DNA of 64,000 nt, from contig NIVC01003056.1 in assembly GCA_002269645.1 (NCBI GenBank), forward strand, positions 1 through 64,000, in the 5' to 3' direction. Positions 32,331 through 63,221 of the stretch are shown here, one piece after another. Origin of the DNA: Macrostomum lignano. Taxonomy: Eukaryota. How positions within the stretch are numbered: the stretch's first letter is position 1; each line of letters begins with the position of its first letter. The notes beneath the pieces were generated by a model. It was not told where the DNA came from. It ran no database searches and worked only from the letters and a program-made list of their open reading frames with translations. The position numbers were made by a program, and so were the translations under genes.

Positions 32331-32376
32331 GACTACGTGTGGGTGGGAGTAGGCTCTCGCGTGGGTGTGGGGTGTT

Positions 32377-33525: not shown

Positions 33526-33841
33526 AACGCTAAGGTAAAAACGCTTTAGGCGTCACACGCACTGGGTTGTGTTAAAATTATCTATATTTTAAACTGACTG
33601 CCTGACTGATTCTTCAGAAAAAATCTAGCTATAAGTATGCTTTGTTTGACTTGAAGTGTAATTTTTGCTGAAATTGCAGACGCAAAGGTGCATAAGTTTT
33701 TAAGAAATGAAAACCAAATTATTCACAAGATATTAAATTTCTGACTTTGACTTTAAGAGAATCAAATTCGAATATCCCCCACCCAAAGTGCGTTTTCGTC
33801 GAAGCATTGTCAAGCAGTTCTCAAGCAGCTGGAGATGAGGC

Positions 33842-34741: not shown

Positions 34742-35330
34742 AGTTTAGCTCGGAATCTCACGGTGAGACTAAGCTTGGGATCTCATGGTGAGACTAAACT
34801 CTGAATCTCACGGTGAGACTAAGCTCGGGATCCCATGGTGAGACTAAGCTCGTGATCTCACACTGAGACTTAAGTTCCGGATCTCAAATTGAGACTAAGC
34901 TCTCGGAATCTCACGGTGAGACTAAGCTCGGAATCTCACGGTGAGACTAAGCTCGGAATCGCACGGTGAAATTAAGTTTGGAATCTCACGGTGAAACTAA
35001 GCTCGGAATCCCAAATAGAGAGTAAGCTCGGAATCTAACGTTGAGACTAAGCTCGTGACCTCAGAGAGACTAAGCTGGGAATCTTACGGTGAGAAAAAAC
35101 TCTGGATCTCACGGTGAGACTAAGCTCTAAATCTCAGAATGAGACTAAGCTTGGGATCTCGTGGTAAGACTAAGCTCGGAATCCCAAATTGAGAGTAAGC
35201 TCGGAATCTAACGGTGAGACTAAGCTGCGGATCTTAAATTGAGACTAAGCACGGAATCTCGCGGTAAGACTAAGCTTAGGATCTCACAGTGAAATTGAAA
35301 CTAAGCTCGTGATTTCATTGTGTGGCTCAC
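34742..35330. repeat. Degenerate 25-bp tandem repeat (ACTAAGCTCGGAATCTCACGGTGAG), ~23 copies
   Basis: Direct reading. Confidence 0.9.
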
Positions 35331-35759
35331 AGTCACAGAGAGACTGAACTCATAACTTCAAGTGAGATATAGCTTACAATCTTACGATGTGACTTTAATG
35401 TGAATCATAATTTTATGATTCATATCATAATTATTTGGTTATTATCTCAATGTTTAGGTTGACCTACTAGCAATCTAGTGCGGCCCCCCTTCGGGGCGCC
35501 CAATAAGCAAGGAGCAAAAATAGTTCACGGAAAAAAATAAAAAAGCACATTTTCTTAAACACCAATTCCTTCTTCACTTTTAAAAATCACCTTAGCTTGT
35601 ATTCGGGTAAAATTGTCACGGAAAATGATGTTTAAAAAGTGAAAGAATCACTTTTTCTCTAAAATTAACAAACAGACAACAAAATATAGCTTCCCCTAAA
35701 TATCAATAGAAAATATTCCCAAGACAGCAAGCACCCCCCTCCAAAAGTAAACAACCGCA

Positions 35760-36580
35760 GATAGCAAGCATCCTCTAATGCTCATAGCAAGCATCCTCTA
35801 ATGCTCATAGCAAGCATCTGCAGATAGCAAGCATCTGCAGATAGCAAGCATCCCCCAGATAGAAGCATCCACCCAGATAGCAAGCATCCTGCAGATAGCA
35901 AGCACCCCCCAGATAGAAGCATCCACCCAGATAGCAAGCATCCTGCAGATAGCAAGCACCCCCCAGATAGAAGCATCCACCCAGATAGCAAGCATCCTGC
36001 AGATAGCAAGCACCCCCCAGATATTATCGAAGCATCCACCCAAATAGCAAGCACCCCCCAGATATTATCGAAGCATCCACCCAAATAGCAAGCATCTGCA
36101 GATAGCAAGCATCCCCCAGATAGAAGCATCCACCCAGATAGCAAGCATCCTGCAGATAGCAAGCACCCCCCAGATATTATCGAAGCATCCACCCAAATAG
36201 CAAGCATCTGCAGATAGCAAGCATCCCCCAGATAGAAGCATCCACCCAGATAGCAAGCATCCTGCAGATAGCAAGCACCCCCCAGATATTATCGAAGCAT
36301 CCACCCAAATAGCAAGCATCTGCAGATAGCAAGCATCCCCCAGATAGAAGCATCCACCCAGATAGCAAGCATCCTGCAGATAGCAAGCACCCCCCAGATA
36401 TTATCGAAGCATCCACCCAAATAGCAAGCATCCTGCAGATAGCAAGAATCCCTAAATAGCAAGCATCCCTGGATAGAAAGAATCCCATACTTGTAGCCAG
36501 TACCCCCCCTCCCAAATAGCAAGTATCCCCCCTCTAGAGCAAGCATCCTCCAAATAGCAAGCATCCGCGAGACAGCAAGT
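35760..36580. repeat. GATAGCAAGCA(T/C)CC ~17-19-bp array with a 112-bp higher-order repeat (inside B1)
   Basis: GATATTATCGAAGC recurs at 36061, 36173, 36285, 36397. Confidence 0.9.
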
Positions 36581-36754
36581 AGCTAGTGCAAATGTTACCT
36601 CCGCTAATGCAATAATCGCTTTCTCAGGTTGTGCAACGATCCACGTCTCAGTGAGCGCAATAATCTCTTTTTTAGACAGCGCAATAATCAGCTTCTCAGC
36701 TAGTGCAATAATCCTTTACTCATCAAGTTCAAAAATCGATGTCTCAGCTAGTGC

Positions 36755-37440
36755 AATAGCCCTTTCAAATCTAGTGCAATAATCCTTGGTTTATCAAAGT
36801 GCGATAATCCTTGGCTTATCAAGTGCAATAATCCTTGGCTTATCAAGTGCAATAATCTTTGGCTTATCAAGTGCAATAATCCTTGGTTTATCAAGCGCAG
36901 TAATCTTTGGCTTATCAAGTGCAATAATCTTTGGTTTATCAAGCGCAGTAATCTTTGGCTTATCAAGTGCAATAATCCTTGGTGTATCAAATGCAATAAT
37001 CTTTGGCTTATCAAGTGCAATAATCCTTCGTTTATCAAGCGCAGTAATCTTTGGCTTATCAAAAGCAATAATCTTTGGTTTATCAAGCGCAGTAATCTTT
37101 GGCTTATCAAGTGAAATAATCATTGGCTTATCAAGTGCAATAATCCTTGGTTTATCAAGTGCAAAAATCCTTACAGTAATCCTTGGTTTATCAAGTGCAA
37201 TAACCCTTGGGTTATCAAGTGCAATAATCCTTGGCTTATCAAGCGCAAAATTCCTTGGCTTATCAAGTGCAGTAATCCTTGGTTTATCAAGTGCAATATT
37301 ATTTGGTTTATCAGGCGCAGTAATTCTTGGTTTATCAAGAGCAATAATCCTTGGTTTATCAAGTGCAATATTATTTGGTTTATCAGGCGCAGTAATTCTT
37401 GGTTTATCAAGTGCAGTAATCCTTGGTTTATCTAGCGCCA
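36755..37440. repeat. 24-bp array (ATAATCCTTGGTTTATCAAGTGCA), ~28 copies, inside B1
   Basis: Direct reading; source of the LGLSSAII and ALDKPRII ORFs. Confidence 0.95.
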
Positions 37441-37489
37441 TAATTTAGGTCTTTTTAATTAGTTTTTTAATAAAAGCTAATAAAAAGTA

Positions 37490-37890
37490 CAAGACATTCT
37501 TAGAATACATAGTAGAAGACATTCTTCGAATAGAAAGTAGAATCGATTCTTAGAATACAAAGTAGAAGACATTTTTAGAATACAAAAGTAGAAGAGATTC
37601 TTAGAATACAAAGTAGAAGACATTCTTAGAATACAAATTAGAAGACATTATTCGAATAGAAAGTAGAATAGATTCTTAGAATACAAAGTAGAAGAGATTC
37701 TTAGAATACAAAGTAGAAGACATTCTTAGAATACAAAGTAGAAGACATTCTTAGAATACAAAGTAGAAGACATTCTTAGAATCAACAAAGTAGAAGAGAT
37801 TCTTAGAATAGAAAGTAGAAGACATTCTTAGAATACAAGTAGAAGACATTGTTAGAATGCAAAAGTAGAAGAGATTCTTAGAATAGATTT
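37490..37890. repeat. 25-bp array (TAGAATACAAAGTAGAAGACATTCT), ~16 copies, inside B1
   Basis: Direct reading. Confidence 0.93.
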
Positions 37891-38403
37891 ATATATTCAA
37901 CACTCACACCACGTCAATTGAGTTCAAGTCACACGAAAAGTTAGGACATAATCAATTTCTTAGGCAAGTCAGTACCAGTCTCTATTAAAGTTAGCAATAT
38001 GGTTACGCAATATAAATCAAGTGTTGTGCTATGCTTCCACACTGCGTTTTCAATACTGTGACGCAATTCAATTCAGTGTCAAAATTCTGCCAGTACACAG
38101 ACGATAAATAAAAAGCCTATTGTGATGCAATCTATTTCAGAATCAGAATTCAACCAGTCAGTTTTTTCTCTAGCATTCTTACAATGCATTTCAAGTCGAA
38201 AAGTTTGCTTGACCTTTGCAAAAAAGCATGTTTTTCGAATATTTAATCCCTTTAGCATTTAGAAATTTCTTAGCCAAGATACATGTACCGTCCCGGGAAA
38301 ATTTCTGATCGAACAGTGCAAATTCGAACAAAATCGGTTGAGCCTTTTGGGAGATAATCGATTTCGTACAAACAAACAAACATCACATTTTTAGTATTGA
38401 CCT

Positions 38404-40950
38404 ACTAGCAATCTTCGCCCCCCGATGGGGGACATCTAGATAGAATCTCTGTTCTCTACAAGTATCAATAAGATGGCCAAACAAAGCCTTCACATAGTCA
38501 ATAGAAAAACTGCTCAGATGAAGTGCAATGCAAAAAGAAAACATCCTAAGACAGCAAGCATCCCCCCAGATAGCAAGCACCACCAGATAGCAAGCACCTC
38601 CAGATAACAAGCACCCCCAGATAGCAAGCACCCCCAGATAGCAAGCACCACCAGATAGCAAGCACCTCCAGATAACAAGCACCCCCAGATAGCAAGCACC
38701 CCCAGATAGCAAGCACCCTCAGATAGCAAGCACCCCAGATAGCAAGCACCCCCAGATAGCAAGCACCCTCAGATAGCAAGCACCCCAGATAGCAAGCACC
38801 CCCCCAGATAGCAAGCACCCCCAGATAGCAAGCACCCCCAGATAGCGAGCACCCCCAGATAGCAAGCACCCCCAGATAGCAAGCACCCCCAGATAGCAAG
38901 CACCCCAGATAGCAAGCACCCCAGATAGCAAGCAACCAATTGATAGCAAGTATTGATCCTATACTAAATAGCAAGCATCCACCGGACAATAAGTAGCAAG
39001 TGCAACAATTTCCTTAGCTTTATAATGGCTCCTTTGTGATTGGCATGACGCTTCTTTTTACGTTTGAAATTGCGTCTCCTATGTTTGACATGGTGGCTCT
39101 TTAATGTTCGACATGCTGGCTTTTTACTGTTAGACATGGTGGCTCTTCTATGTTTGACGTGGTGGCTCTTCTATTTTTGACATGGTGGCTCTTTAATGTT
39201 CGACATAGTGGCTCTTTAATGTTAGACATGGTGGCTCTTCTATGTTTGACATGGTGGCTCTTCTATTTTTGACATGGTGGCTCTTTAATGTTCGACATGG
39301 TGGTTCTTTAATGTTTGACATGGTGGTTCTTTAATGTTCGACATGGTGGCTCTTTAATGTTCTACATGGTGGCCCTTTAATGTTCGACATGGTGGCTCTT
39401 TACTGTTAGACATGGTGGCTCTTTTAGGTTTGACATAATGGCTCTATAATGTTTGACATGGTGGCTCTTTAATGTTCGATATGGTGGCTCTTTTATGTTA
39501 GACATGGTGGCTCTTTAATGTTCGATATGGTGGCTCTTTAATGTACGACATGGTGGCTCTTTACTGTTAAACACGGTGGCTCTTTAATGTTTTACATGGT
39601 GGCTCTTTAATGTTTGACATGGTGGCTCTTTAATGTTCGACATGGTGGCTCTTTAATGTTCGAAATGGTGGCTCTTTAATGTTTGACATAAAGTCACATA
39701 TATGTTTGACATGGTGGCTCTTTAATGTTCGAAATGGTGGCTCTTCAATGTTCGAAATGGTGGCTCTTTTATGTTCGACATGGTGGCTCTTTTAGGTTTG
39801 ACATGGTGGCTCTTAAATGTTTGATATGGTGGCTCTTTAATGTTTCACATGGTGGCTCTTTAATATTTGACATAAAGTCACATATATGTTTGACATGGTG
39901 GCTCCTAAATGTTTGACATGGTGGCTCTTTATGTTTGACATGGTGGCTCTTTTATGTTCGACATGGTGGATCTTTTTTGTTCTACATGGTAACTCTTTTA
40001 TGTTTGATACGGTGGCTTTTTAATGTCTGACATGTTGGCTCTTTTATGTTTGACATGGTGGCTCTTTAATGTTCGACAAAGTGGCTCTTTTATGTTTGAC
40101 ATGGTGGCTCTTAATTGTTTGACATAGTGGCTCTTTAATGTTCAAAATGGTGGCTCTTTAATGTTCGAAATGGTGGCTCTTTAATGTTCGAAATGGTGGC
40201 TCTTTAATGTTCGAAATGGTGGCTCTTTTATGTTTGACATGGTGGCTCTTAAATGTTTGACATGGTGGCTCTTTAATGTTCGACATGGTAGCTCTTTTAT
40301 GTTTGACATGGTAACTCTTATGTTCGATATGTTGGCTCTTCTATGTTTGACATTGCGCTTCTTTGATGTTTAGCAGTTTTGTTGTGTTTTTAAGGTGTTT
40401 TAATAAAAAAAATCTTTTTGCACTACTAAGATTCGAACCCAGGTCGCTACATTAGCATTCTAGTCTGTTCGCATCAGGGCTATCTCTTTTCAATTGGAGA
40501 ACATGAATTGTGGCCCTTATAATTCAATTCTTACAGCAAGTCAATTGGAGTAAAAAGTTATGACATAATCAATTTCTCAGTCAGCCAGTATCAGTCTCAA
40601 TTTAAGTTAGCAATATGGTTACGCAATTTAAATCAAGTCGTGTGTGCATTTCTTTGACACTGTTTTCAACTTGTTGTGATGCAATCTTTATCACAATCGG
40701 AATTCAGTCAGTCAGTTTTTTCTCTAGCATTCTTACAATGCATTTCAGGTCGAAAGAGCTGCTTGACCTTTGCAAAAAAGCATGTTTTTCGAATATTTAA
40801 TCCCTTTAACATTGAGCAATTTCTTAGCCAAGATGCATGTACCGTCCCAGGAAAATTTCTGATCGAATGGTGCAAGTTTGAAGAAAATCGGTTGAGCCAA
40901 TTTTTCTGAAATCTATCGCATACCCACAGACAACTCATTTTTAGTATATA
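38404..40950 (-). mobile_element. Non-autonomous Helitron-like element, family B, copy B2
   Basis: Starts TATATACTAAAAATGAG; ends CCCCCATCGGGGGGCGAAGATTGCTAGT; has a 23-bp array (GGTGGCTCTTTAATGTTTGACAT, ~39080-40350) and a 17-bp array (~38530-38945). Confidence 0.8.
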
Positions 40951-40952
40951 GG

Positions 40953-43900
40953 ACTAGCAATCTTTGCCCCCCGATGGGGGACATCTGGATAGAATCCTTG
41001 TTTTTTACAAATAACAAATAGACGGCGAAATAAAGCCTTCAGAAAAAACAACAGACATTTCCTCTTAAAAACAAAACATCCCAAGACAGCAAGCATCCTC
41101 AGACAACATTCAAGCATTGATCCCCAAATAGCAAGCATCCCCCAGACTGCAAGCATCCCCCAGATAGCAAGCATCCCCAGATAGCAAGCATCCCTCAGAC
41201 TGCAAGCATCCCCCGATAGCAAGCATTCCCCCAGACCCCAGATAGCAAGCATCCCCCAGATAGCAAGCATCCCGCAGATAGCAAGCATCCCCCAGATAGC
41301 AAGCATTCCTCAGATAGCAAGCATCCCCCAGATCGCAAGCATCCCCAGATAGCAAGCATTCCCCCAGACCCCAGATAGCAAGCGTCCCCCAGATAGCAAG
41401 CATCCCGCAGATAGCAAGCATCCCCCAGATAGCAAGCATCCCGCAGATAGCAAGCATCCCCCAGATAGCAAGCATCCCCCAGATAGCAAGCATCCCCCAG
41501 ATAGCAAGCATCCCCCCCCAGATAGCAAGCATCCCCCAGACAGCAAGCAACCCCTGATAGCAAGCATAACCTGGATACAAAGATACCTTATAGATATCTA
41601 GCAACCCCCTCTCAGATAGCAAGTACTCTCCACCCCCAAGAGCAAGCATCCCCCTGATAGCAAGTATCCATCCTTAAATAGCAAGCATCCACCAGAGAAC
41701 AAGTAGCTAGTGCAACAATTTCCTTAGCTTTATAATGGTTTCATTTTGTTTGGCATGACACTTCTTTTATGTTTGAAATGGTGTCTCTTTTTTGTTTAAA
41801 AAAGTGGCTTTTTAATGTTTGACATGGTAGCTCTTTTGTGTTTGACATGATAGCTCTTTAATGTTGGACGTGGTGGCCCTTTTGTGTTTGACATGGTAGC
41901 TCTTTAATGTTTGACATGGTGGCTCTTCTATGTTTGCCATGGCGGCCCTTTTACGTTTGAAATGGTGTCTCTGTTATGTTTGACATGGTGGCTTAGTTGT
42001 TTGACATGGTGGCTCTTCTATGTTTGACATGGTGGCTCTTCTATGTTTGACATGGCGGCCCTTTTACATTTGAAATTGTGTCTTTTTATATTGGGCATAA
42101 TGGCTCAATAATGTTTTGACATGGTAGCTCTTTTATGTTTGATATGGTGGCTCCCTTATGTGTGACATGGTGTCTTTTTTATTTTTAATGTTTGACATGG
42201 AGTCATATATGTTTGACATGGAGTCATATATGTTTGACATGGAGTCATATATGTTTGACATGGTGGCTCTTTAATGTTTGACATGGAGTCACGTATATGT
42301 TTGACATGGTGGCTCTTTAATGTTTGACATTGAGTCACGTATATGGTTCACATGATGGCTCTTTTATGTTTGACATGATGGCTCTTTTATGTTTGACATG
42401 GTAGCTCTTTTATATTTTACATGGTGGCTCTTTTATGTTCGACATGGCTGATCTTGAATGTTTGACATGGTGGCTCTTTAATGTTTGACATGGTGGCTCT
42501 TTAATGTTTGACATGGTGGCTCTTTTATGTTTGATATGGTGGCTCCTTAATGTTGAACATGGTGGCTCTTTAATGTTCGACATGGTGGCTCTTTTATGTT
42601 TGACATGATGGCTCTTTTATGTTTGACATGGTAGATCTTTTATGTTTGACATGGTGGCTCTTAAATGTTTGAAATGTTGTCTCTGTTATGTTCGACATGG
42701 TGTCTCTTGAATGTTTGACATGGTGGCTCTTTAATGTTTGACATGGTGGCTCTTTTATGTTCGACATGGTGGCTCTTTTATGCTCGACATGGTGGCTCTT
42801 TAATGTTTGACATGGTGGCTCTTTAATGTTCAACATGGTGGCTATTTTATGCTCGACATGGTGGCTCTTTTATGTTTGACATGGTGGCTCTTAAATGTTT
42901 GAAATGTTGTCTCTGTTATGTTCGACATGGTTTCTCTTGAATGTTTGACATGGTGGCTCTTTAATGTTTGACATGGTGGCTCTTTTATGTTTGACATGGT
43001 GGCTCTTTTATGCTCGACATGGTCGCTCTTTTATGTTTGACATGGTGGCTCTTAAATGTTTGAAATGTTGTCTCTGTTATGTTCGACATGGTGGCTCTTT
43101 TATTTTTGACATGGTAGCTCTTTTATATTTTACTTGGTGGCTCTTTAATGTTTGACATGGTGGCTCTTCAATGTTCAAAATGGTGGCTCTTTAATGTTCG
43201 ACATGGTGGCTCTTTAATGTTTGACATGATGGCTCTTTTATGTTTGAAATGTTGTCTCTGTTATGTTTGACATAGTGGCTCTTTAATGTTCGACATGGTG
43301 GCTCTTTTATGTTTGACATGATGGCTCTTTTATGTTTGAAATGTTGTCTCTGTTATGTTCGACATGGTGGCTCTTTAATGTTTGACATGGTGGCTCTTTA
43401 ATGTTTGACATTGAGTCACGTATATGTTTCACATGGTGGCTCTTTTATGTTTGAAATGGTGGCTCTTTTATGTTTGACATGGTGTCTCTTCTGTGTTCTA
43501 CATGGTGGCACTTTTTTTTGTTTGGCATGGTGGCTCTTTTATATTTGACATTGCGCTTCTTTTATGTTTAGCATTTTGTGTTTTAAAGTGTTTTAATAAA
43601 AAAATGTTTTTGCACTACTAAGATTCGAACCCGGGTCGCTACATTAGCATTCTAGTCTGTTCGCATCTTGGCTATCTCTTTTCAATTGGAGAACATGTAT
43701 TGTGGCCCTTATAATTCAATTCTTATAGCAAGTCAGTTAGAGTAAAAAGTTATGACATAATCAATTTCTCAGTCAGCCAGTATCAGTCTCAATTCAAGTT
43801 AGCAATATGGTTACGCAATTACAATCAAGTCTTGTGTGCATTTTTTCGACACTGTTTTCATCTTGTTGTGATGCAATCTTTATCACAATTGAAATTCAGT

Positions 43901-44153
43901 CAGTCAGTTTTTTCTTTCGCATTTTTACAATTCATTTCAGGTCGAAACAGCTGCTTGACCTTTGCAAAAAAGCATGTTTTTCGAATATTTAATCCCTTTA
44001 AAATTGAGCAATTTCTTAGCCAAGATGCATGTACCGTCCCAGGAAAATTTCTGATCAAATGGTGCAAGTTTGAAGAAAATCGGTTGAGCCACTTTTTCTG
44101 AAATCTATCGCATAGCTAGTTAGTTACAGACATTTCATTTTTAGTATATATGA
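40953..44153 (-). mobile_element. Non-autonomous Helitron-like element, family B, copy B3
   Basis: Starts A|TCATATATACTAAAAATG; ends CCCCCATCGGGGGGCAAAGATTGCTAGT; 23-bp array ~41800-43550 and 17-bp array ~41085-41690. Confidence 0.8.
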
Positions 44154-44286
44154 TTTAAAATGACATCCTATACGCATTCCAGTATGTCAAATATATTCAT
44201 AACAAAAAATTACATTTTGTTAAAAGCAGAAACAACTGCTTTCGCACCTAATTACGCCAATTGTGAGTCTTCTCCTCTCCTCTCTC

Positions 44287-53200: not shown

Positions 53201-56200
53201 CCCGCGGGCCGCTGTGTATTGAGGGGTGGTGGGTGCGCGTGTTCTGGGTTCAATGCAAATAAAACCCCCCGCGTGTTGGGGGGTTGAGTTAAATTTAATG
53301 CTTCCCCCAGAACGGGGGGTTGGGCTTGGGCTGAGTGTACATAGCAGTTGTACAGTGTAAATAGATAGACTGTGTCGAGATTCATTTGGTTTTATTATTG
53401 GCAGCCCTGTGTATTAGTTTGGCAGTGAAATTCAATGAATAAACTTGCGAGCTTCTCTAGCAAGCAGTCGGGAAATCGGTAAATTTCAAACGCTAACTGT
53501 TCCTCGAGTTTTAAACTTTGAGAGAAGAGACTTATATTGCTGGAAAGATCTTGCAGCGCTGAGTTCGGGGATATAAGTTGTATGCTTTAAATATGAAAAG
53601 ATATGAAAAGACTGTGTCGAGATTCATTTGGTTTTATTATTGGCAGCCCTGTGTATTAGTTTGGCAGTGAAATTCAATGAATAAACTTGCGAGCTTCTCT
53701 AGCAAGCAGTCGGGAAATCGGTAAATTTCAAACGCTAACTGTTCCTCGAGTTTTAAACTTTGAGAGAAGAGACTTATATTGCTGGAAAGATCTTGCAGCG
53801 CTGAGTTCGGGGATATAAGTTGTATGCTTTAAATATGAAAAGAAAAAGCACCGCATTTAAAAAACTATTTCCATACTTTTAACTTTCTGCAAAAATTGTA
53901 CTCAGTTTTGCGAGACGTAATAGATAAAGTTGGGCGTATTGGAAGGGGGTCTGCCGCTGCGTATTGGAGGGTTGATTTAGACTGCGCAACCGTTTATTTA
54001 AATTTAAATAAGACTGATACTGTCTGACTGAGAAATGGTTTGCGCAATTAATTGATTCAATTAATTCAACACGCAGCTCTGTGCAGCTCTAACCCTAACC
54101 CTAACCAATGAATTCTGAGAGTTAAGTTCTTTTTGACAGAGAAAATTTCGATTGAGTCCAGTTTCACGGAGTATTCTGATGGTTTTCGGTTTCACGGAGA
54201 GGATTTCTTTTTCGTGGAGAGAATCTAGATGTATTTCTGTTTTACGGAGACGATTTTGATGGATGTCAGTTTCACTCAGAGGATTTCCATGGAGCCCAGT
54301 TTCACGGAGAGGATTTCTGTTTGGCGGATTGGATTTCGAAAGGAGTCCAGTTTCGCGGAGAGGATTTCTGTTTCGCGGAGAGGATTTCTGTTTCGCGGAG
54401 AGGATTTCTGTTTCGCGGAGAGGATTTCTGTTTCACGGAGGGATTTTGATGGATTTGGTATCTTCAGTCAGTCAGTAAAGAGAGTAAAGAGAAGAGTGAA
54501 AAGAGAAGAGAGAAGAGATTATAGAAAAGAGAGTAGAGATGAGAGAGGACAGATTAGACATGACAGATGGGAGAGAAGAGGGGAGTAAGGCGGGAACGAA
54601 GAGGGAGAGAGAAGAAAAGAGGAGAGAGGAGATGAGAGGGAAGATATGAGATAGCAGAGGGAGACAGGAGAGATGAGAGGAGAGAGAAGAGAGGAGCTGA
54701 GAGTAGAGGAGAAAGAAATAGTGAGATGAGGCATGAGGGATGTGAGATGAGAGAGGAGAGAAGAGAGGAGAGAGGTGAAAACAGGGGATAAAGGAGACAG
54801 GAGAGAAAGACGAAAGATGAGGGAGAAGAGATAAATAAGGTGGTAGAGATGAGAGACGTGAGAGGAGAGAAAAGAGAAGAGAGGAGACAGAAGAATCTGA
54901 GTCTGGACAATGGCAGTCAGTTTTTGCGAACAGGGAAAACAAGATATGGTAATGGAAAGGCTTTACAGAGGATTTGGAGATGATTTGGAAGATGGGATTC
55001 AAGTCATGGAATTTCAGCTGATGGATTTCAGGGAATGGAATTCCGGTGATGGGAGTTCTTCCCCTTTCTCCTCCAGAGGAGGAGTTGGCCTCGTCTCTTA
55101 ATACTAAAGTTGGTGCGTTGTTTGTCTGTGTGTGTGTGTGTTTGTTGGATAACTCCTCCTAGAATACTTGCAAGTCAGCGTTGAAACTTATATGGGAAAA
55201 CTGCAAATTTTCCGAGGATGGCTTTAGGCTATTTTAATCTTTCATTTTCAATTTTTAAGATCCCTAAAAAAGCAGAAAATGGCGGTCTTGACCTTTGATA
55301 ATCTTAATTGTCCCCTCTTTCTGCTTGGAGCTGAAAATTTGCATAAATTTTAGTGATTGCGCCATAAAATTTTTCTATCTTGGCAGTGTATTTTCTCTCA
55401 AGTGGGGGATGGTCGCGTTCTCAGTGGCTGCGTGTGTACACTTGAACCCTGGCTCACTGACTGACTTTATAGACAATTGCGCAACTATTTGTGTTCTGTT
55501 TTTTAACAGGAAGCCCTGTGTATTTTTTGCACAGTGAAATTCAGTGCATTTTAATGCATAAACTTGCGAGCATCTTTAGCAGGCAGTGAACGTACACTCG
55601 ATATTTCAATGCTTAAAATCAGAAAGTTTCAAACACTAACTGTTGCTCGAGTTTTGAACTTAGAGAGGAGAGACTTATATTGCTGGAAAGATCTTGCTGC
55701 AATGAGTTCGGGGATATAAGTTTTTTGCTTTAAATATGAAAATTAAATTCACAGCATTCAAGAAAAGATTTTCATACTTTTAGCTTTCTGCAAAGATTGT
55801 GCTCATTTTGGAGTTCAATGGGGGTTCGACCGACCCCCCAATAGTTGGTGGGGGGGGGTTCAATTTCTAGCTGCACTGCGTATTGGAAGGGGGGTCGGTT
55901 GCTGTGTATTTGAGGGTTGATTTAGATTGCGCAATCTTTTTGTTAACTTTAACTGAGGCTGATACTGACTGCCTGAGAAATAAGTTGCGCAATTTAATTG
56001 GTTCAATGTTTTTACGGCGTCTTTCAACACGCAGCTGTGTGTAGCTCTAACCCTAACCCTAACCTTAACCAATGAATTCTGAGAGCTGGGCTGTTTGACG
56101 TAGAAATTTCGATTTAGTCCAGTTTCACGGAGAGGATTTCTATTTCGCGGAGAATATTTCGATGGTGTTCAGTTTCACGGAGACGATTTCTGTTGCGCGG

Positions 56201-59200
56201 AGAGGTGTTGGAAAATGGGATTCCGCTGATGGAGTTCAGGGAATGGAATTCCGCTAATTGGAGTTCTTCCCCTTTCTTCTCCGAAGGAGGAGTTGGCCTC
56301 GTAAATACTAAAAGTGGTGCGTTGTTTGTCTGTGTGATACATATCTCCTCCTAGACGACTTGCAAGTCAGCGTCGAAACTTATATGGGAAAACTGCAAAT
56401 TTTCCGAGGATGGCAGTGGGCTATTTCAATTTTTTATTTTTGCATTTTAAGATCCCGAAAAAAGCAAAAAACTGCAATATTGACCTTTGATAATCTTATT
56501 TGTCCCCTCTTTCTGCTTGGAGCTGAAAACTTGCATGAATTTTGAGTGATTGCGCCATAACTTTCTCCTATCTCTGCAGTGTATTTTCTCTCCAGTGGGG
56601 GGTGCTTGCGTTCTCAGTGGCGGCGTGTGTACACTTGGACCTTGGCGCACGGGCTGACTGTATAGACAATCGCGCAACGATATGTGCTCTGATTTTCAAT
56701 TAGGCAGCCCGGTGTATTTTTTGCACACTGAAATTCAATGCATCAACTTGCGAGCCTTTTTAGCAGGCAGGTGAACGTACACTCGATACTTCAATGCTTT
56801 AAATCGGGACATTTCAAACGCAAACTGTTCTTCGAGTTCTAAACTTTAAAAGAATATACTTATATTGCTGGAAAGATCTCGCAACACTGAGTTCGGGGAT
56901 ATAAGTTGTTTGTTTTAAATGCGAAAAGAAAAAACACAGCGATCGAAAACAACTTCCATACCTTTTACTTTCTGGAAATATTGTACTCATTTTGGGGTTC
57001 AATGGGGGTTCGACCAACCCCCCAACAGTTGGTGGGAGGGGGGGGCGGTTCAACTTTTAATTGCCACTGCGGAAGGGGGTCAGTCGCTGTGTATTGGAGG
57101 GTTGATTTAGATTGCGCAATCATTTCGTTAACTTTACCTGAGCCTGATACTGACTGAATGAGAAAACGGTTGCGCAATAAATTGATTCAATTAATTCATA
57201 TTTTTATCGGCGCCTTTCAACCCGCAGCTCTGTGCAGCTCTAACCCTAACCCTAACTAATGAATCCTGAGAGTTGAGTTCTGTTTGACGGAGAAAATTTC
57301 GATTGGGTCCAGTTTCGCGGAGAGGATTTCTGTTTCGCGGAGAGGATTTCGATGGTGTTCAGTTTCACGGAGAGGATTTTAATGGATTTGGAGAACAGTT
57401 AGATGATGGGATTCAGCTGATGGAGATCAGGGAATGGAATTCCGGTGATGGGAGTTCTTCCCCTTTCTCCTCCAGAGGAGGAGTTGGCCTCGTCTTAATA
57501 CTAAAGTTGGTGCGTTGTTTGTTTGTTTGTTTGTCTGTTTGTTTGTAGGATATCTCCTCCTAGACTACGTGCAACTCAGCGTTGAAACTTATATGGGAAT
57601 ACTGCAAATTTTCCGGAATCGGCTTTAGGCTGTTTTAATCTTTCATTTTTTAATTTTAAGATCCCTAAAAAAGCAGAAATCTGATTTCCTAACCTTCTCT
57701 GGACACTTTTTCTGCTCGGAGCTGAAAATTGGCATAAATTTTGAGTGATTACGCCACAACTTTTTCCTATGTCGCCAGTGCATTTTCTCTCCTGTGGGGG
57801 AATGGGCGCGTTCTCATTGGCGGCGTGTGTACAATCGGACCCTGGCTCACTGGCTGACTTTATAGACAATTGCGCAACTATTTGTGTTCTGTTTTTTAAC
57901 AGGAAGCCCTGTGTATTTTTTGCACAGTGAAATTCAGTGCATTTTAATGCATAAACTCGCGAGCATCTTTAGCAGGCAGTGAAGGTACACTCGATATTTC
58001 AATGCTTAAAATCAGAAAGTTTCAAACGCTAACTGTTGCTCGATTTTTTAACTTTGAGAGACGAGACTTTTATTGCTGGAAAGAGCTTGCAGCGCTGAGT
58101 TCGGGGATATAAGTTTTTTGCTTTAAATATGAAAATTAAATTCACAGCATTCAAGAAAAGATTTTCATACTTTTAGCTTTCTGCAAAGATTGTTCTCATT
58201 TTGGAGTTCAATGGGGGTTCGACCGACCCCCCAATAGTTGGTGGGGGGGGGGGGGTTCAATTTCTAGCTGCACTGCGTATTGGAAGGGGGGTCGGTTGCT
58301 GTGTATTGGAGGGTTGATTTAGATTGCGCAATCTTTGTGTTAACTTTAACTGAGGCTGATACTGACTGCCTGAGAAATAAGTTGCGCAATTTAATTGGTT
58401 CAATGTTTTTACGGCGCCTTTCAACACGCAGCTGTGTGTAGCTCTAACCCTAACCCTAACCCTAACCAATGAATTCTGAGAGCTAGGCTGTTTGACGTAG
58501 AAATTTCGATTTAGTCCAGTTTCACGGAGAGGATTTCTATTTCGCGGAGAATATTTCGATGGTGTTCAGTTTCACGGAGAGGATTTCGATAGTGTTCAGT
58601 TTCACGGAGACGATTTCTGTTGCGCGGAGAGGTGTTGGAAAATGGGATTCCGCTGATGGAGTTCAGGGAATGGAATTCCGCTGATTGGAGTTCTTCCCCT
58701 TTCTTCTCCGAAGGAGGAGTTGGCCTCGTTAATACTAAAGTTGGTGCGTTGTTTGTCTGTTTGTGTGATACACATCTCCTCCTAGACGACTTGCAAGTCA
58801 GCGTTGAAACTTATATGGGAACACTGCAAATTTTCCGAGGATGGCAGTGGGCTATTTCAATTTTTTATTTTCAAATTTTAAGATCCCTAAAAAAGCAGAA
58901 ATCGTAGAACAATAGGGGAATATGCCCATCTTGCGTAATTTGCAATGATTGCGCCACAACAGCTGGCCTATCTGTGCAGTGTATTCTTTCAGCTGAAGGA
59001 GTGTAAGCTGGGCCGGTTGACATCAATTTTTAGCGATTGCGCCACAACTGTGTGCACTGAGAACTTAACCAAACCCCTCTGTGTTGAGGGTGCTGGGGCG
59101 GCAGTGGAATTTAATGAATAAACTTGCAAGCCTTTTTAGCAGGCAGTGCACGCATGCGTACACTCGATAGTTCAATGCTTTAAATTGGGATATTTCAAAC

Positions 59201-59998
59201 GCCAACTGTTCCTCGAGTTTTGAACTCTGAGAGAAGAGACTTATATTGCTGGAAAGATCTTTCAATGCAGACTTCGAGGATATAAGTTGTTTGCTTTAAA
59301 TGTGAAAACAAAAAGCACAGCATTTAAAAAACGATTTCCATACTTTTAACTTTCTGCAGTGTACTCATTTTGGAGTTCAATGGGGGTTCGACCAACCCCC
59401 CAACAGTTGGTGGGAGGGGAGGGGCGGTTCAACTTTTAATTGCCACTGCGGAAGGGGGTCAGTCGCTGTGTATTGAAGGGTTGATTTAGTTTGCGCAATC
59501 TTTTTGTTAACTTTTACCGAGACTGATACTGACTGACTGTGAAATCGGTTGCGCATTCAATGAATTTAATTGGTTCAATTTTTTATCGGCGCCTTTCAAC
59601 ACGCTGCTGCGTTGTAGCTCTAACCCTAACCCTAACCCTAACCACTAAATCCTGAGTGTTGATTCTTTTTGACGGAGAAAATTTCGATTCAGTCCAGTTT
59701 TAAGGAGAGAATTTCTGTTTCGCGGAGACGATTTTAATGGATTTCAGTTTCACGCAGAGGATTTCCATAAAGTCCAGTTTAACGGAGAGGATTTCTGTTT
59801 CTCGGAGAGGATTTTGATGAATGTCAGTTTCACGGAGAGGTTTTTGATGGAGTTATCTTTTACGGAGAGGATTTCGATGATGTTCAGTTTCGCGGAGAGG
59901 AGTTGGATGATGGGATTCAGGGAATGGCATTTCAGGGAATGGAGTTCCGGTGATGGGAATTCTTCCCCTTTCTCCTCCAGAGGAGGAGTTGGCCTCGT
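44287..59998 (+). mobile_element. Head-to-tail array of 10 non-autonomous Helitron-like family-A units: approx. 44287-45573, 45574-46770, 46771-49546, 49547-51752, 51753-52944, 52945-55094, 55095-56302, 56303-57493, 57494-58729, 58730-59998
   Basis: Each unit opens with (TC)..ATACTAAA, a GTTT/GTCT microsatellite and CTCCTCCTAG (unit 6 has TCTCCTAG); carries a (CCCTAA)2-3 tract and TTCACGGAGAGGATTT repeats; and closes with hairpin CTCCTCC-nnn-GGAGGAG (units 7 and 9 have one stem mismatch) plus CTCGT (unit 3 ends CCACTT). No Rep/helicase ORF. Confidence 0.8.
48268..49385 (+). repeat. Polypurine (AG-rich) low-complexity tract in family-A unit 3; related tracts at 50871-51590 and 54472-54900
   Basis: Almost only A/G on the plus strand; shared landmarks such as GAGTAGA..GAG..GAGATTAGACATGAC. 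Confidence 0.92.
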
Positions 59999-62900
59999 AT
60001 ATACTAAAAATGAGTTGTCTGTGGGTATGCGATAGATTTCAGAAAAATTGGCTCAACCGATTTTCTTCAAACTTGCACCATTCGATCAGAAATTTTCCTG
60101 GGACGGTACATGCATCTTGGCTAAGAAATTGCTCAATGTTAAAGGGATTAAATATTCGAAAAACATGCTTTTTTGCAAAGGTCAAGCAGCTCTTTCGACC
60201 TGAAATGCATTGTAAGAATGCTAGAGAAAAAACTGACTGACTGAATTCCGATTGTGATAAAGATTGCATCACAACAAGTTGAAAACAGTGTCAAAGAAAT
60301 GCACACACGACTTGATTTAAATTGCGTAACCATATTGCTAACTTAAATTGAGACTGATACTGGCTGACTGAGAAATTGATTATGTCATAACTTTTTACTC
60401 CAATTGACTTGCTGTAAGAATTGAATTATAAGGGCCACAATTCATGTTCTCCAATTGAAAAGAGATAGCCCTGATGCGAACAGACTGGAATGCTAATGTA
60501 GCGACCTGGGTTCGAATCTTAGTAGTGCAAAAAGATTTTTTTTTATTAAAACACCTTAAAAACACAACAAAACTGCTAAACATCAAAGAAGCGCAATGTC
60601 AAACATAGAAGAGCCAACATATCGAACATAAGAGTTACCATGTCGAACATTAAAGAGCCACCATGTCAAACATTTAAGAGCCACCATGTCAAACATAAAA
60701 GAGCCACCATTTCGAACATTAAAGAGCAACTATTTTGAACATTAAAGAGCCACTATGTCAAACAATTAAGAGCCACCATGTCAAACATAAAAGAGCCACT
60801 TTGTCGAACATTAAAGAGCCACCATGTCAAACATAAAAGAGCCAACATGTCAGACATTAAAAAGCCACCGTATCAAACATAAAAGAGTTACCATGTAGAA
60901 CAAAAAAGATCCACCATGTCGAACATAAAAGAGCCACCATTTCGAACATAAAGAGCCACCATGTCAAACATTTAGGAGCCACCATGTCAAACATATATGT
61001 GACTTTATGTCAAATATTAAAGAGCCACCATGTCGAACATAAAAGAGCCACCATGTCAAACATAAAGAGCCACCATGTCAAACATTTAGAAGCCACCATG
61101 TCAAAGATTTAAGAGCCACCATGTCAAACATTTAAGAGTCACCATGTCAAACATAAAAGAGCCACCATTTCAAACATTGAAGAGCCACCATTTCGAACAT
61201 TGAAGAGCCACTATTTCGAACATTAAAGAGCCACCATGTCAAACAATTAAAAGCCAGCATGTCAAACATAAAAGAGCCACTTTGTCGAACACTAAAGAGA
61301 CACCATGTCAAACATAAAAGAGACAACATGTCAGACATTAAAAAGCCACCGTATCAAACATAAAAGAGTTACCATGTCGAAAATTAAAGAGCCACCATGT
61401 AGAATATTAAAGAGGCACCATGAAGAACATTAAAGAGCCACCATGTCAAACATTTAGAAGCCACCATGTCAAAGATTTAAGAGCCACCATGTCAAACATA
61501 GAAGAGCCACCATGTCAGATATTAAAAAGAGCCACCATGTCGAACATAAAAGAGCCACCATGTCGAACATTAAAGAGCCACCATGTCAAACATATATGTG
61601 ACTTTATGTCAAACATTAAAGAGCCACCATTTCGAACATTAAAGAGCCACCATGTCGAACATTAAAGAGCCACCATGTCAAACATTAAAGAGCCACCATG
61701 TAAAACATTAAAGAGCCACCATGTCTAACAGTAAAGAGCCACCATGTCGTACATTAAAGAGCCACCATATCGAACATTGAAGAGCCACCATGTCAAACAT
61801 TAAAGAGCCACCATGTCTAACAGTAAAGAGCCACCATGTCGTACATTAAAGAGCCACCATATCGAACATTGAAGAGCCACCATGTCAAACATTAAAGAGC
61901 CGCCATGTCAAAACATAAAAGTGCCATCATGTCAAACCTAAAAGAGCCACCATGTCTAACATAAAAGAGCCACCATATCGAACATTAAAGAGCCACCATG
62001 TCAAACATTATAGAGCCATTATGTCAAACCTAAAAGAGCCACCATGTCAAACATTAAAGAGCCACCATGTCGAACATTAAAGAGCCACCATGTCAAACAT
62101 ATATGTGACTTTATGTCAAACATTAAAGAGCCACCATTTCGAACATTAAAGAGCCACCATGTCGAACATTAAAGAGCCACCATGTCTAACAAAAAAGAGC
62201 CACCATATCGAACATTAAAGAGCCACCATGTCAAACATTATAGAGCCATTATGTCAAACCTAAAAGAGCCACCATGTCTAACAGTAAAGAGCCACCATGT
62301 CGTACATTAAAGGGCCACCATGTAGAACATTAAAGAGCCACCATGTCGAACATTAAAGAACCACCATGTCAAACATTAAAGAACCACCATGTCGAACATT
62401 AAAGAGCCACCATGTCAAAAATAGAAGAGCCACCATGTCAAACATAGAAGAGCCACCATGTCTAACATTAAAGAGCCACTATGTCGAACATTAAAGAGCC
62501 ACCATGTCGAACATTAAAGAGCCACCATGTCAAAAATATAAGAGCCACCATGTCAAACATAGAAGAGCCACCATGTCTAACAGTAAAAAGCCAGCATGTC
62601 GAACATTAAAGAGCCACCAAGTCAAACATAGGAGACGCAATTTCAAACGTAAAAAGAAGCGTCATGCCAATCACAAAGGAGCCATTATAAAGCTAAGGAA
62701 ATTGTTGCACTTGCTACTTATTGTCCAGTGGATGCTTGCTATTTAGTATAGGATCAATACTTGCTATCAATTGGTTGCTTGCTATCTGGGGTGCTTGCTA
62801 TCTGGGGGTGCTTGCTATCTGGGGGTGCTTGCTATCTGGGGGTGCTTGCTATCTGGTGGTGCTTGTTATCTGGAGGTGCTTGCTATCTGGGGGGATGCTT

Positions 62901-63052
62901 GCTGTCTTAGGATGTTTTCTTTTTGCATTGCACTTCATCTGAGCAGTTTTTCTATTGACTATGTGAAGGCTTTGTTTGGCCATCTTATTGATACTTGTAG
63001 AGAACAGAGATTCTATCTAGATGTCCCCCATCGGGGGGCGAAGATTGCTAGT
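59999..63052 (+). mobile_element. Non-autonomous Helitron-like element, family B, copy B4 (inverted near-copy of B2)
   Basis: Starts ATATACTAAAAATGAGTTGTCTGTGGG right after the CTCGT of unit 10; ends CCCCCATCGGGGGGCGAAGATTGCTAGT at 63052; 23-bp array ~60600-62630. Confidence 0.8.
60466..60544 (+). other. tRNA-like Pol III box module inside family B (also 40415-40480 and 43605-43675 on the minus strand)
   Basis: A-box-like TAGCC(CT/AA)GATGCG, B-box GGGTTCGAATC about 42 nt later, then a T run. Confidence 0.5.
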
Positions 63053-63221
63053 AGAAAGCTAAAGCCGGATATTTTTATCCAAGCTAAAACTAAAACAGTA
63101 GCTAGTTTTAGCAAATAAGAACTCAAAATGTCGCCAAAAAGTACATGACGCGGAAAATGATCTGTTTACACGCAGGATCAGGAGACAGATGGGTGATCTC
63201 GGTGGTCGGTGGGTCAGAATG

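Follow-up and report, generated by a model that had tools for sequence, protein, structure and literature searches.

Two polar stacks of heterologous Helitrons at neighbouring host sites in Macrostomum lignano, consistent with serial insertion at element ends

Homogeneous tandem arrays of Helitrons are said to have been described in Myotis lucifugus by Pritham and Feschotte in 2007. Such arrays are also formed by Helitron-1_DPe on Drosophila Y chromosomes (PMC9248874), and truncated centromeric Helitron arrays occur in plants (Xiong et al., 2016, summarised in PMC12628747). Transposable element (TE) dimers in Drosophila melanogaster are ascribed to insertion-site preference (McGurk and Barbash, 2018, summarised in PMC12628747). 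In the maize r1 region, two unrelated Helitrons are adjacent and arranged head to tail, which was concluded to reflect consecutive insertions and not tandem replication, with entry at the terminus of an element already present being discussed (Du et al., 2008; PMC2267711). Maize Helitrons are stated to prefer to insert near other Helitrons (Yang and Bennetzen, 2009, cited in PMC12477314). Finally, DINE-1, HINE and Cg_HINE are non-autonomous Helentrons with microsatellites and central tandem repeats (PMC2374699, PMC4067079, PMC7492417), and Paramecium Helitrons, which carry minisatellite cargo, gather at the ends of germline chromosomes (PMC13085455).

Organization and termini of the two stacks

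The window considered here, namely, the whole 64-kb stretch of M. lignano contig NIVC01003056.1 that was analysed (1-64000), contains 14 Helitrons at positions 35467-63051, arranged in two stacks that comprise three family-B elements on the minus strand and ten family-A elements plus one family-B element on the plus strand. The polar block of this composition proposed in the first-pass annotation was thus recovered with all of its elements and junctions, including the exact junctions given at 46770, 40950 and 59998. Likewise, the few-bp gaps reported there correspond to 0-7 nt between the recognisable ends of adjoining units, all of which lie head to tail. Two boundaries were refined. The block had been placed at 35466-63052, yet 35466 and 63052 are host T, such that the stack limits are 35467 and 63051. 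The unique spacer reported at 44154-44286 is present and begins as described but ends at 44267 (114 bp), given that empty paralogous sites assign 44268-44288 (TCTTCTCCTCTCCTCTCTCTC) to the 5' end of A1. This spacer is no more than the host sequence that separates two target sites oriented back to back. The features are as follows:

35452..35466, minus strand: host target context of the minus stack, TAGGTCAACCTAAAC (minus-strand reading), CTAAA 9 nt past the insertion point; in paralogs L004 and L006, joined directly to the spacer
35467..38397, minus strand: B(-)3, older divergent family-B Helitron; 18-mer, 24-mer and 25-mer arrays; 3' hairpin followed by GATTGCTAG
38398..38404, minus strand: TAGGTCA, a 7-nt filler separating B(-)2 from B(-)3, same as the first 7 nt of the host flank beyond B(-)3
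38405..40953, minus strand: B(-)2, young family-B Helitron; 5' TCCTATATACTAAAAATG, 3' CTAG; ~99.7% identical to B(+) outside the arrays
40954..44153, minus strand: B(-)1, family-B Helitron; 5' end TCATATATACTAAAAATG adjoins host A
44154..44267, no strand: host DNA between the insertion sites, uninterrupted and ~98% identical in both paralogous contigs
44268..45572, plus strand: A1, family-A unit; at the 5' end, TC and a TC-rich run followed by TAATACTAAAG
45573..46769, plus strand: A2, young A subtype; 99.5% identical to A8, 99.2% to A5
46770..49546, plus strand: A3, long A unit; 30-mer repeats, GA-rich tract
49547..51751, plus strand: A4, long A unit related to A3; 98% identical to A3 over the last 150 nt, ~82-88% elsewhere
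51752..52943, plus strand: A5, young A subtype; nearly identical to A2 and A8
52944..55093, plus strand: A6, long A unit; perfect 242-bp tandem duplication inside
55094..56301, plus strand: A7, A unit
56302..57492, plus strand: A8, young A subtype; nearly identical to A2 and A5
57493..58728, plus strand: A9, A unit; 97% identical to A7 over the last 150 nt
58729..59997, plus strand: A10, A unit
59998..63051, plus strand: B(+), young family-B Helitron; 3' CTAG adjoins host T
63052..63066, plus strand: host target context of the plus stack, TAGAAAGCTAAAGCC, CTAAA 7 nt past the insertion point

The units, which range from 1.19 to 3.2 kb among neighbours, are all non-coding, and no RepHel ORF or transposase gene was found in the 64-kb window. 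The remaining 36 kb of the window contain no further A or B copies, and ~98 kb of other M. lignano sequence yielded a single A/B copy. The region is very rich in tandem repeats, and a loose period-3 order (x, A2-type, y) can be discerned in A1-A9.

The 5' motif ATACTAAA is found on the plus strand at 44292, 45581, 46777, 49554, 51755, 52949, 55101, 56305, 57498, 58732 and 60001; its minus-strand positions are 44147, 40947 and 38397. At the other end, the hairpin CTCCTCC-NNN-GGAGGAG is followed by TTGGCCTCG or TTCCACT.. in the ten family-A elements, and a hairpin precedes GATTGCTAG in the four family-B elements of the block. The distance from a 3' end to the next ATACTAAA is 3-8 nt at the A and B(+) junctions and 6-10 nt in the minus stack. 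Searching for TATATACTAAA with at most one mismatch returned 10 matches, as opposed to 1.4 expected, and a GC-rich hairpin followed by CTAAA within 36 nt appeared at every stack junction and in just two other places in 64 kb. The junction sequences differ from one another, with most internal junctions reading G|T, not A|T.

Each stack bears 5'-TC and CTAG-3' at its outer termini, without target duplication. A 5' TC was seen where empty sites set the boundary, as in B(-)1 (TCATATATAC), the solo B copy in paralog L002 (TCCTATATAC) and A1 (TCTTCTCC); B(-)2 likewise starts with TCCTATATAC. For B(+), A5, A8 and A10, TC can be read only by taking TCG from the upstream CTCG, an ambiguous assignment; at 59995-59997, for example, TCG could belong to the 3' end of A10 or to the 5' end of B(+). 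The family-B 3' terminus is CTAG in all five copies, the solo copy of L002 included. The family-A terminus reads CTCG (CACTT in A3), the last base being approximate since none adjoins host DNA. The 3' stems predicted for family A (CTCCTCC/GGAGGAG), family B (CCCCC/GGGGG) and B(-)3 (GCC.CCCC/GGGG.GGC) differ in sequence but are constant in position, 9-17 nt from the end, and are of modest energy (z -0.9 to -2.2).

The assignment of these elements as Helitron-like therefore stands and can be sharpened for family B, which is a canonical Helitron by all four sequence hallmarks, namely, TC, CTAG, the 3' hairpin and A|T insertion without duplication. The last was observed at the minus-stack site (site L) and at the solo B site; the plus-stack site (site R), where G|T was used, departs from the canonical A|T, and the apparent family-A terminus, CTCG/CACTT, departs from CTRR. 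Membership in the Helentron/HINE (DINE-1-like) group was also considered. The layout of that group, that is, a 5' microsatellite, central tandem repeats and a 3' stem-loop, is seen in both families as a resemblance of layout only: past the first 20 nt comes a (GTTT/GTCT)n run, followed by 17/18-, 23-, 24-, 25- and 30-mer arrays and the 3' hairpins. Helentron-type insertion in TT was not observed, with the verified targets being A|T, A|T and G|T. Nor were the 12-15 bp subterminal inverted repeats of Helentrons, with family A offering just an internal 5' block (AACTCCTCC, located 44-68 nt from the 5' end) that matches the 3' hairpin arm over 7-11 nt, and no inverted repeat being found between the end regions of family B.

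Empty paralogous sites and recent insertions

Two paralogous contigs, NIVC01000398.1 and NIVC01001973.1, share both flanking genes with NIVC01003056.1; the Btz-like ORF of the window is 100% identical to M. lignano PAA53605.1. Both paralogs are continuous (...GGTTGACCT(A/T)|TTTAAAATG...(spacer)...CCAATTGTGAG|TAGAAAGCTAAAGCC...). As the left flank, 114-bp spacer and right flank are contiguous there, both contigs present precise empty sites for both stacks, and the 27.5 kb are therefore insertional, at two host sites. This shows that the ancestor shared by the three paralogous copies had an empty locus; the flanks of the three copies are 97.4-98.0% identical (~2% divergence). Site L reads A|TCA...CTAG|T and the solo B of L002 reads A|TCC...CTAG|T, the latter having matching empty sites in the window and in L003. 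Of the three host targets verified in this manner, A|T (site L), A|T (solo B) and G|T (site R), none (0/3) shows target duplication.

Unit order and junctions are as read from the assembled contig, and the stacks could in principle have been created by mis-joined repeats, the genome being highly repetitive and partly polyploid and its assembly based on long reads. Although the M. lignano genome is very repetitive, and assemblers can create features such as a perfect 242-bp duplication or three 1.2-kb units that are nearly identical, the boundaries of the stacks against host DNA match the empty paralogous sites to the nucleotide, all units are complete and most are distinct, and the junction sequences differ; chimeric joins would not honour termini 13 times. 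As such, an artefact has very little chance of being the explanation.

Barring the young trio (A2, A5 and A8) and the A3/A4 and A7/A9 tails, identity among the A units is 76-92% in their first 330 nt and 80-93% in their last 150 nt, most units being 8-24% apart from one another. Since the flanks differ by only ~2% and two families are involved, the units were already different on arrival, showing that diverged subtypes were integrated. The earlier observation that neighbouring units differ in subtype and even in family was hence borne out (76-93% identity at ends, two families). The same values, together with the range of unit lengths (1.19 to 3.2 kb), led to rejection of a rolling-circle concatemer of one donor. 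The difference between flank (~2%) and unit (8-24%) divergence also excludes in situ tandem duplication; a satellite or higher-order repeat generated by unequal crossing-over was rejected on the same grounds, the locus having been empty ~2% divergence ago.

A2, A5 and A8 are 99.2-99.5% identical across 1192 nt, yet their flanks show 16-91% identity per 50-nt window, with divergence beginning right at the termini. B(+) and B(-)2 (~99.7% identical) differ at two positions within the first 580 nt and agree throughout the last 170 nt, the shared stretch beginning at TATATAC and ending at CTAG(TAG). In the young copies of both families, identity thus ends within a few nt of the termini, with neighbours being ~80-88% alike. 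These patterns show at least five recent, separate integrations, each (5/5) at the end of a resident element; the chance of all five landing at the ~11 boundaries of an 18.4-kb old stack is p ~1e-13 to 1e-16. The remaining nine insertions are older. Empty paralogous sites, pre-diverged units and identity ending at termini accordingly uphold the proposal of repeated insertion at resident ends and not of single-donor concatenation.

Growth in place by tandem duplication or unequal crossing-over, with A2, A5 and A8 subsequently homogenised by gene conversion, would account for the period-3 pattern (x, A2-type, y) of A1-A9, for the A3/A4 and A7/A9 tails being 97-98% alike and for the abundance of tandem repeats in the region. 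Such growth is nonetheless scarcely credible, given that most units, from two families, are 8-24% apart at a locus that was empty ~2% divergence ago, that the near-identity of A2, A5 and A8 is bounded by termini in 3/3 cases with the adjacent flank nucleotides differing, as conversion tracts would not be, and that B(+) and B(-)2 lie on opposite strands in separate stacks. The similar tails of A3/A4 and A7/A9 could reflect local conversion or duplication.

A further possibility is that each stack was built elsewhere and moved in as one giant composite Helitron, with only two insertions occurring at the locus. Each whole stack does start with TC and end with CTAG without target duplication, and both 3'-end bypass and composite or chimeric Helitrons are on record (PMC5148889). 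However, the enzyme would have had to skip 10 internal 3' ends, all of them intact, and as many internal 5' ends across 18.8 kb. In addition, the host-derived 7-mer TAGGTCA sits within the minus stack, which means that this junction, at least, formed in place. Moreover, two insertions 114 bp apart and in opposite orientation would still demand a site preference, and end-targeted insertion would still be needed at the donor locus to explain stacking. Delivery of entire composite stacks is accordingly considered unlikely; part of a pre-formed stack may have moved en bloc.

The preferred reading, held with a probability of roughly 80%, is instead that the two stacks of non-autonomous Helitrons each arose by serial integration at one host site, with newcomers entering exactly at a resident boundary or adjoining the original host target. 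Two features do not fit clean integration, namely, the TAGGTCA filler and the 5'-truncated B(-)3, which begins at ATACTAAAA and apparently lacks ~6 nt.

Target motif and proposed mechanism

Insertion at boundaries could also be had without end recognition, should a permissive or hot chromatin domain be hit repeatedly and the A|T regenerated at the resident 5' boundary be used by chance. Indeed, where the first element of a stack begins, its 5' boundary restores a canonical A|T, and maize Helitrons are reported to favour sites near other Helitrons (review PMC12477314). Still, the old stack offers TT/AA dinucleotides by the thousand as well as many A|T sites, and yet 5/5 young insertions lie at boundaries, 0/14 elements interrupt another element or the 114-bp spacer, all units of a given stack share one orientation and internal junctions are mostly G|T, not A|T. 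A hot domain by itself is thus highly unlikely to suffice.

CTAAA lies at +6 to +9 of the insertion point in 3/3 paralog-verified host sites, as in the elements' own 5' ends. The background at that offset is 0.73% of N|T sites; CTAAA and the upstream ATT were spotted post hoc on two sites and the third was checked afterwards (p ~0.007), for a total of three naive sites. Host ATTGTGAG, upstream of the plus-stack site, moreover resembles the family-B 3' end, ATTGCTAG. The shared CTAAA suggests that the transposase selects targets imitating the junction of its own ends. Within the old stacks, about a dozen internal CTAAA-motif sites on the same strand were left unused, and the motif alone is therefore insufficient for targeting; we infer that the upstream 3' end would be recognised as well. 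Because naive host sites share CTAAA, the landing pad may be a 3'-end|5'-end junction or any look-alike.

In the mechanism envisaged for serial integration, a Rep/helicase transposase would cut targets resembling the joined 3'-end|5'-end junction that it normally cuts at its own element ends and on the circular intermediate. Junction cutting on a circular intermediate is reported for other Helitrons. The first element would enter at a naive host T followed 6-9 nt later by CTAAA, resembling a 5' end. The chromosome would then hold true end junctions, which, as better substrates, would receive more elements in the same orientation, the outcome being a stack that is polar and reinforces itself. 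A single enzyme probably mobilised families A and B, as argued by their common 5' end, T..ATACTAAA, and simultaneous activity. More tentatively, and with the odds somewhat against it, the transposase may take the chromosomal 3'-end|5'-end junction and its host imitations (ATT..(A)G|T N5-8 CTAAA) for the joined-end junction of the circular intermediate, the site thereby becoming a self-reinforcing landing pad. Were this the case, a first insertion would turn a weak look-alike site into a perfect substrate, and an orientation-fixed pad would gather different non-autonomous elements serially, generating an integron-like cassette array of eukaryotic rolling-circle elements.

Comparison with known systems

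DINE-1/HINE elements share with the flatworm elements a short conserved 5' block, a (GTYT)n-type microsatellite, fast-changing central minisatellite arrays and a 3' stem-loop. Helentrons, however, insert in TT and carry 12-15 bp subterminal inverted repeats, whereas the flatworm elements use A|T or G|T, present TC...CTAG and offered no such repeats; stacks of the flatworm kind are not described in PMC2374699, PMC4067079 or PMC7492417. The Helitrons of Paramecium also contain minisatellite arrays and pile up in a single orientation at particular positions, but do so at telomeric repeats or the ends of chromosomes, form part of a different Helitron clade and are not described as multi-family end-to-end stacks at an internal site. 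In D. melanogaster, repeated use of a preferred site similarly yields head-to-tail multimers able to seed tandem repeats, although these involve other TE classes, a target in or beside the element and mostly single-family dimers.

Bacterial HUH single-strand transposons (IS200/IS605, IS91/ISCR) reuse the recognition of their own ends in target recognition. With these the flatworm elements would share HUH tyrosine nuclease chemistry and the idea of a target resembling the element's own end, albeit by analogy only; the bacterial systems are prokaryotic and use a short fixed target (e.g., TTAC), and we know of no comparable heterologous stacks of them.

Like the flatworm stacks, homogeneous Helitron arrays consist of rolling-circle elements placed head to tail with no host DNA between units. 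There, one donor is repeated, often in truncated form, and read-through or rolling-circle amplification is held responsible; in the flatworm, adjacent units are of different subtypes or families, all are full length and entry into an empty site was serial. Finally, the maize r1 pair resembles the flatworm stacks in that a 3' CTAG is directly followed by the 5' TC of a different element, at a G|T junction. That pair comprises two elements in an unresolved order of insertion, whereas the flatworm locus has two sites that together contain 14 elements from two families, is dated by empty paralogs and adds five demonstrably recent events and a motif common to host targets and element 5' ends.

Architecture of the stacked block

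The first-pass annotation had described a block of stacked elements, a structure that is present in the window, where 5' motifs are paired with 3' ends at the junctions; the three junctions it had quoted are all exact. The block comprises the following features.

35467-38397, minus strand: family-B element B(-)3
38405-40953, minus strand: family-B element B(-)2
40954-44153, minus strand: family-B element B(-)1
44154-44267: host DNA between the two stacks (the spacer)
44268-59997, plus strand: ten family-A units, A1-A10
59998-63051, plus strand: family-B element B(+)

Both families open with T(A/T)(A/T)ATACTAAA and continue into a short (GTTT/GTCT)n run. Examination of the window revealed 11 plus-strand occurrences of the ATACTAAA motif (44292-60001) and three on the minus strand (38397-44147), with a 3' end lying 3-10 nt upstream of every occurrence, bar the two facing the spacer. 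These 3' ends are either of the family-A type (hairpin CTCCTCC-NNN-GGAGGAG, then TTGGCCTCG) or of the family-B type (a GC hairpin, then GATTGCTAG). Matches to the 5' motif numbered 10 in the window, as compared to 1.4 expected, and a GC-rich hairpin followed by CTAAA within 36 nt was found at all block junctions and, across the remainder of the 64 kb, just twice. In a self-comparison of the window, sequence of either family was confined to 35467-63051.

Family-A units span 1.19-2.78 kb and contain 30-mer repeats, with three also containing GA-rich tracts, while family-B elements span 2.5-3.2 kb and contain 17/18-mer and 23-mer arrays, replaced in B(-)3 by 24-/25-mer arrays. The predicted 3' hairpin lies 9-17 nt from the terminus, with three different stem sequences occupying the same position. 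The exact last base of the family-A 3' terminus is ambiguous, and the short TC/TCG runs seen at junctions may belong to either of the two adjoining elements. The GA-rich polypurine tracts (0.5-1.2 kb; 48260-49460 in A3, 50870-51670 in A4 and 54470-55000 in A6) give rise to strong GC and AT skew and, on the strand opposite, to long ORFs that are spurious and rich in Ser/Leu. A6 also holds a perfect (100%) 242-bp tandem duplication (53367-53843) that must either have arisen very recently or have been introduced by the assembly. A tRNA T-arm-like string, GGTTCGAATC, is found in the unique 5' part of family B (~60500-60530), with B(-)1 and B(-)2 carrying it at the corresponding position; ARAGORN called no tRNA there, and scans of the window identified neither tRNA genes nor Rfam families. 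No Rep/helicase ORF was found in the window, and Pfam searches of its larger ORFs returned only Btz and a weak FLYWCH match.

Empty paralogous sites and the class of the elements

The ORF found at 23451-24164 encodes a protein with 100% identity to Macrostomum lignano PAA53605.1. The gene for the latter has identical coordinates in NIVC01003056.1 (Mlig_3_7 assembly, 75,333 bp), such that the window corresponds to 1-64000 of this contig. Contigs NIVC01000398.1 and NIVC01001973.1 encode proteins at least 90% identical to this protein (same 90% cluster), together with an identical 97-aa neighbor gene, and represent the same locus in paralogous (homeologous or allelic) form. M. lignano is a species with hidden polyploidy. 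For comparison, 10 kb past the 97-aa gene were taken, such that the position of the stacks was reached in both contigs. In both, the sequence left of 35466 is contiguous with the spacer, and the spacer is contiguous with the sequence right of 63052, reading ...GGTTGACCT(A/T)^TTTAAAATGACATCC...CCAATTGTGAG^TAGAAAGCTAAAGCC..., with carets marking the points of insertion. Because left flank, spacer and right flank are contiguous in the paralogs, 35467-44153 and 44268-63051 were wholly inserted. As such, what had been annotated as a unique spacer of ~135 bp is indeed a stretch between the stacks, yet measures 114 bp (44154-44267) and is ordinary host DNA between two target sites. Given the orientation of the stacks, any transcript running out of this stretch in either direction would be sense to all of the elements.

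The left insert, in minus-strand reading, lies between A and T, starts with TCATATATAC and ends with CTAG. The right insert is bordered by G and T, starts with TCTTCTCC...TAATACTAAAG and likewise ends with CTAG. Target duplication is absent in both cases. A solitary 3.7-kb family-B Helitron was found in one of the three paralogous copies, at 2053-5763 of the piece fetched from NIVC01001973.1, where it reads A^TCCTATATAC...CTAG^T, again with no duplication, and is followed by CTAAA 6 nt downstream. Its empty counterparts lie at ~19592 in the window and at ~4910 in the piece from the third paralog. Given A^TC...CTAG^T ends and no target duplication at verified empty sites, family B has canonical Helitron ends and target. 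A Helentron/HINE (DINE-1-like) identity, which the microsatellite and central repeats had first suggested together with the T-containing junctions, was rejected on the basis of the A^T and G^T targets, the TC...CTAG ends defined by the empty sites and the lack of subterminal inverted repeats. Additional elements past both block edges, suspected from CTAAA in the outer flanks, were also ruled out, since these flanks are common to all three paralogs and hence host or ancestral sequence; the CTAAA at the edges was then taken as a candidate target feature.

Other copies of the two families were sought. Exact ORF look-ups and pattern scans of metagenomes revealed none, and an ORF that crosses the A10-B(+) junction gave no match when searched against proteins. 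Two further M. lignano loci yielded only one B-like 5' end, TCTAATATACTAAAAATGAAATG with a CTTG-type microsatellite, at ~3240 on the minus strand of a piece of NIVC01000586.1, adjoining a coiled-coil gene, and no 3' end belonging to it was seen. Other paralog-specific indels near the locus proved to be unrelated TIR elements rather than Helitrons. These include a 2.56-kb AT-rich insertion at 15987-18549 with inverted ends CCCTAGATGAAG.../...CATCTAGGG, absent from NIVC01000398.1 and corresponding to a different TIR transposon, and, in NIVC01000398.1 at window-equivalent ~20505, a hAT-like element of ~870 bp with TIRs CAGTGTTGGGCACC and an 8-bp duplication GTAGGCAC. At this same position, the other paralog carries a different insert of ~780 bp and the window carries none.

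Elsewhere in the window, a chain of mutually unrelated minisatellites (31-, 23-, 24-, 17/34-, 13-, 22-, 25- and 31-mers) at 21767-35292 surrounds the Btz-like gene and the 97-aa gene and is shared with the paralogs, several lengths being different. A 184-bp satellite with a 371-bp higher-order period (~20 copies, 88-90% identity) occupies 5647-9410, and a 224-bp inverted repeat (99.6%) has arms at 29417-29640 and 29789-30012, with 148 bp between them. A second inverted repeat, of 200 bp (92%; 10201-10400 and 12864-13061), encloses ~2.5 kb that include the weak FLYWCH zinc-finger match (11926-12240), and may delimit another DNA transposon. Finally, an intact 644-aa ORF (39-1973) is related to M. 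lignano transposase-domain proteins (best identity 61%), with distant relatives bearing DUF4218 and Transposase_21 annotations.

Dating of the stacks and recent integrations

Unique flanks are 97.4-98.0% identical among the three paralogs. The older A units, by comparison, share 76-92% identity over the first 330 nt and 80-93% over the last 150 nt, other than the A3/A4 and A7/A9 tails (97-98%). Because the site was empty ~2% divergence ago and most A units differ by 8-24%, these were already distinct subtypes upon arrival. Fourteen elements of two families thus entered two sites in a short time, in a process of which at least five events are separable. Were the sites empty through loss, each of the two paralogs would have had to shed both stacks precisely and independently of the other, which is less parsimonious.

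The separable events involve near-identical elements. A2, A5 and A8 share 99.2-99.5% identity across 1192 nt. When the three were aligned with 300-nt flanks, identity was ~100% from (T)(A/T)AATACTAAAAG to ...GGCCTCGTC and 16-91% per 50-nt window just outside, with the nucleotides adjacent to the termini already differing. Similarly, B(+) and B(-)2, found in separate stacks on opposite strands, show two differences in the first 580 nt and none in the last 170 nt, with identity extending from TATATAC to CTAG(TAG) and the 23-mer arrays comprising 89 and 56 copies, respectively. A2, A5, A8 and B(-)2 are each flanked by a resident 3' end and by the 5' end of the following resident, and B(+) lies between the A10 3' end and the host. 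With any bond, or any TT/AA, of the older 18.4-kb stack taken as equally likely, the location of all five recent integrations at its ~11 boundaries has a p value of ~1e-13 to 1e-16. A higher-order-repeat or gene-conversion origin was rejected on the basis of boundaries and dating, since conversion tracts would not end at the termini of A2, A5 and A8 three times. Entry of a circular copy into a resident unit by homologous recombination was also rejected, since the identical tract would then cross a junction, rather than run from end to end as observed.

One junction does not fit clean Helitron integration. The host 7-mer TAGGTCA that follows the B(-)3 3' end (35466-35460) is repeated at 38398-38404, between the B(-)2 3' end and a B(-)3 lacking its first ~6 nt. 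The repeated 7-mer could have arisen in a single step, if two haplotypes whose occupants of one site differed underwent non-homologous exchange. Part of a stack may have transposed en bloc; the host TAGGTCA inside the minus stack, however, shows that at least the B(-)2/B(-)3 junction was made at this locus. Taken together, the empty paralogous sites, the divergence of flanks versus units and the five separable integrations support the accretion proposed in the first-pass annotation, and serial end-targeted Helitron insertion is considered to have built the block with a probability of roughly 80%.

Proposed target recognition and comparison with known cases

At all three paralog-verified host sites, CTAAA begins 6-9 nt past the insertion point (TAGGTCAAC-CTAAA, TAGAAAG-CTAAA and TTCTTT-CTAAA), and the element 5' ends share this motif and spacing (TCCTATATA-CTAAA and TCTTAATA-CTAAA). 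Of the N^T positions counted across 134 kb of host sequence, only 0.73% have the motif, such that the fit of the third host site, examined after the motif had been noticed, corresponds to p ~0.007. Post hoc, ATT was seen at -8 to -6 upstream of all three sites, and the G^T site, ATTGTGAG^T, was seen to resemble the family-B 3' end, ATTGCTAG^T. Because about a dozen internal same-strand motif sites in the older stacks went unused, CTAAA alone is not enough, and the neighboring 3' end probably contributes to recognition. The best-fitting model that we infer, offered tentatively and with the odds somewhat against it, is that the target imitates the element's own joined end junction. The HUH transposase would cut targets that look like the 3'^5' junction of joined ends, a first element would land at a weak host look-alike, and true junctions would then raise the attractiveness of the site stepwise and fix orientation. 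In other Helitrons, a joined-end junction of this kind was demonstrated through the detection of circles (cited in PMC5148889). If true, such mimicry would account for one-orientation Helitron clustering, for chimeric or composite Helitrons with new 5'/3' end combinations and for minisatellite-carrying elements seeding larger repeat blocks.

Helitron target choice and cutting are still poorly understood, and whether head-to-tail pairs reflect a by-product of replication or insertion beside a resident has been debated since 2007-2008. The present locus offers a natural experiment, in which polyploidy-derived empty sites date the stack and fix the element ends. Head-to-tail arrays of homogeneous Helitrons have been described, and the accounts of PMC5148889 and PMC12628747 explain these by rolling-circle read-through. 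In Fusarium, 2 bp separate one element from another, and no firm reading was given of a Metarhizium triple (PMC5148889), while in Drosophila, TE dimers arise from site preference, as summarized in PMC12628747. No such stacks of tandem-repeat-carrying Helentrons are described in PMC2374699, PMC4067079 or PMC7492417. In maize, Helitrons are said to insert in one another's vicinity (as cited in PMC12477314), and two unrelated maize Helitrons joined as CTAG^TC were read as consecutive insertions of unresolved order (PMC2267711). In contrast to that pair, the locus considered here comprises 14 elements of two families at two sites, and adds to the maize observation nucleotide-exact dating and a candidate target rule.
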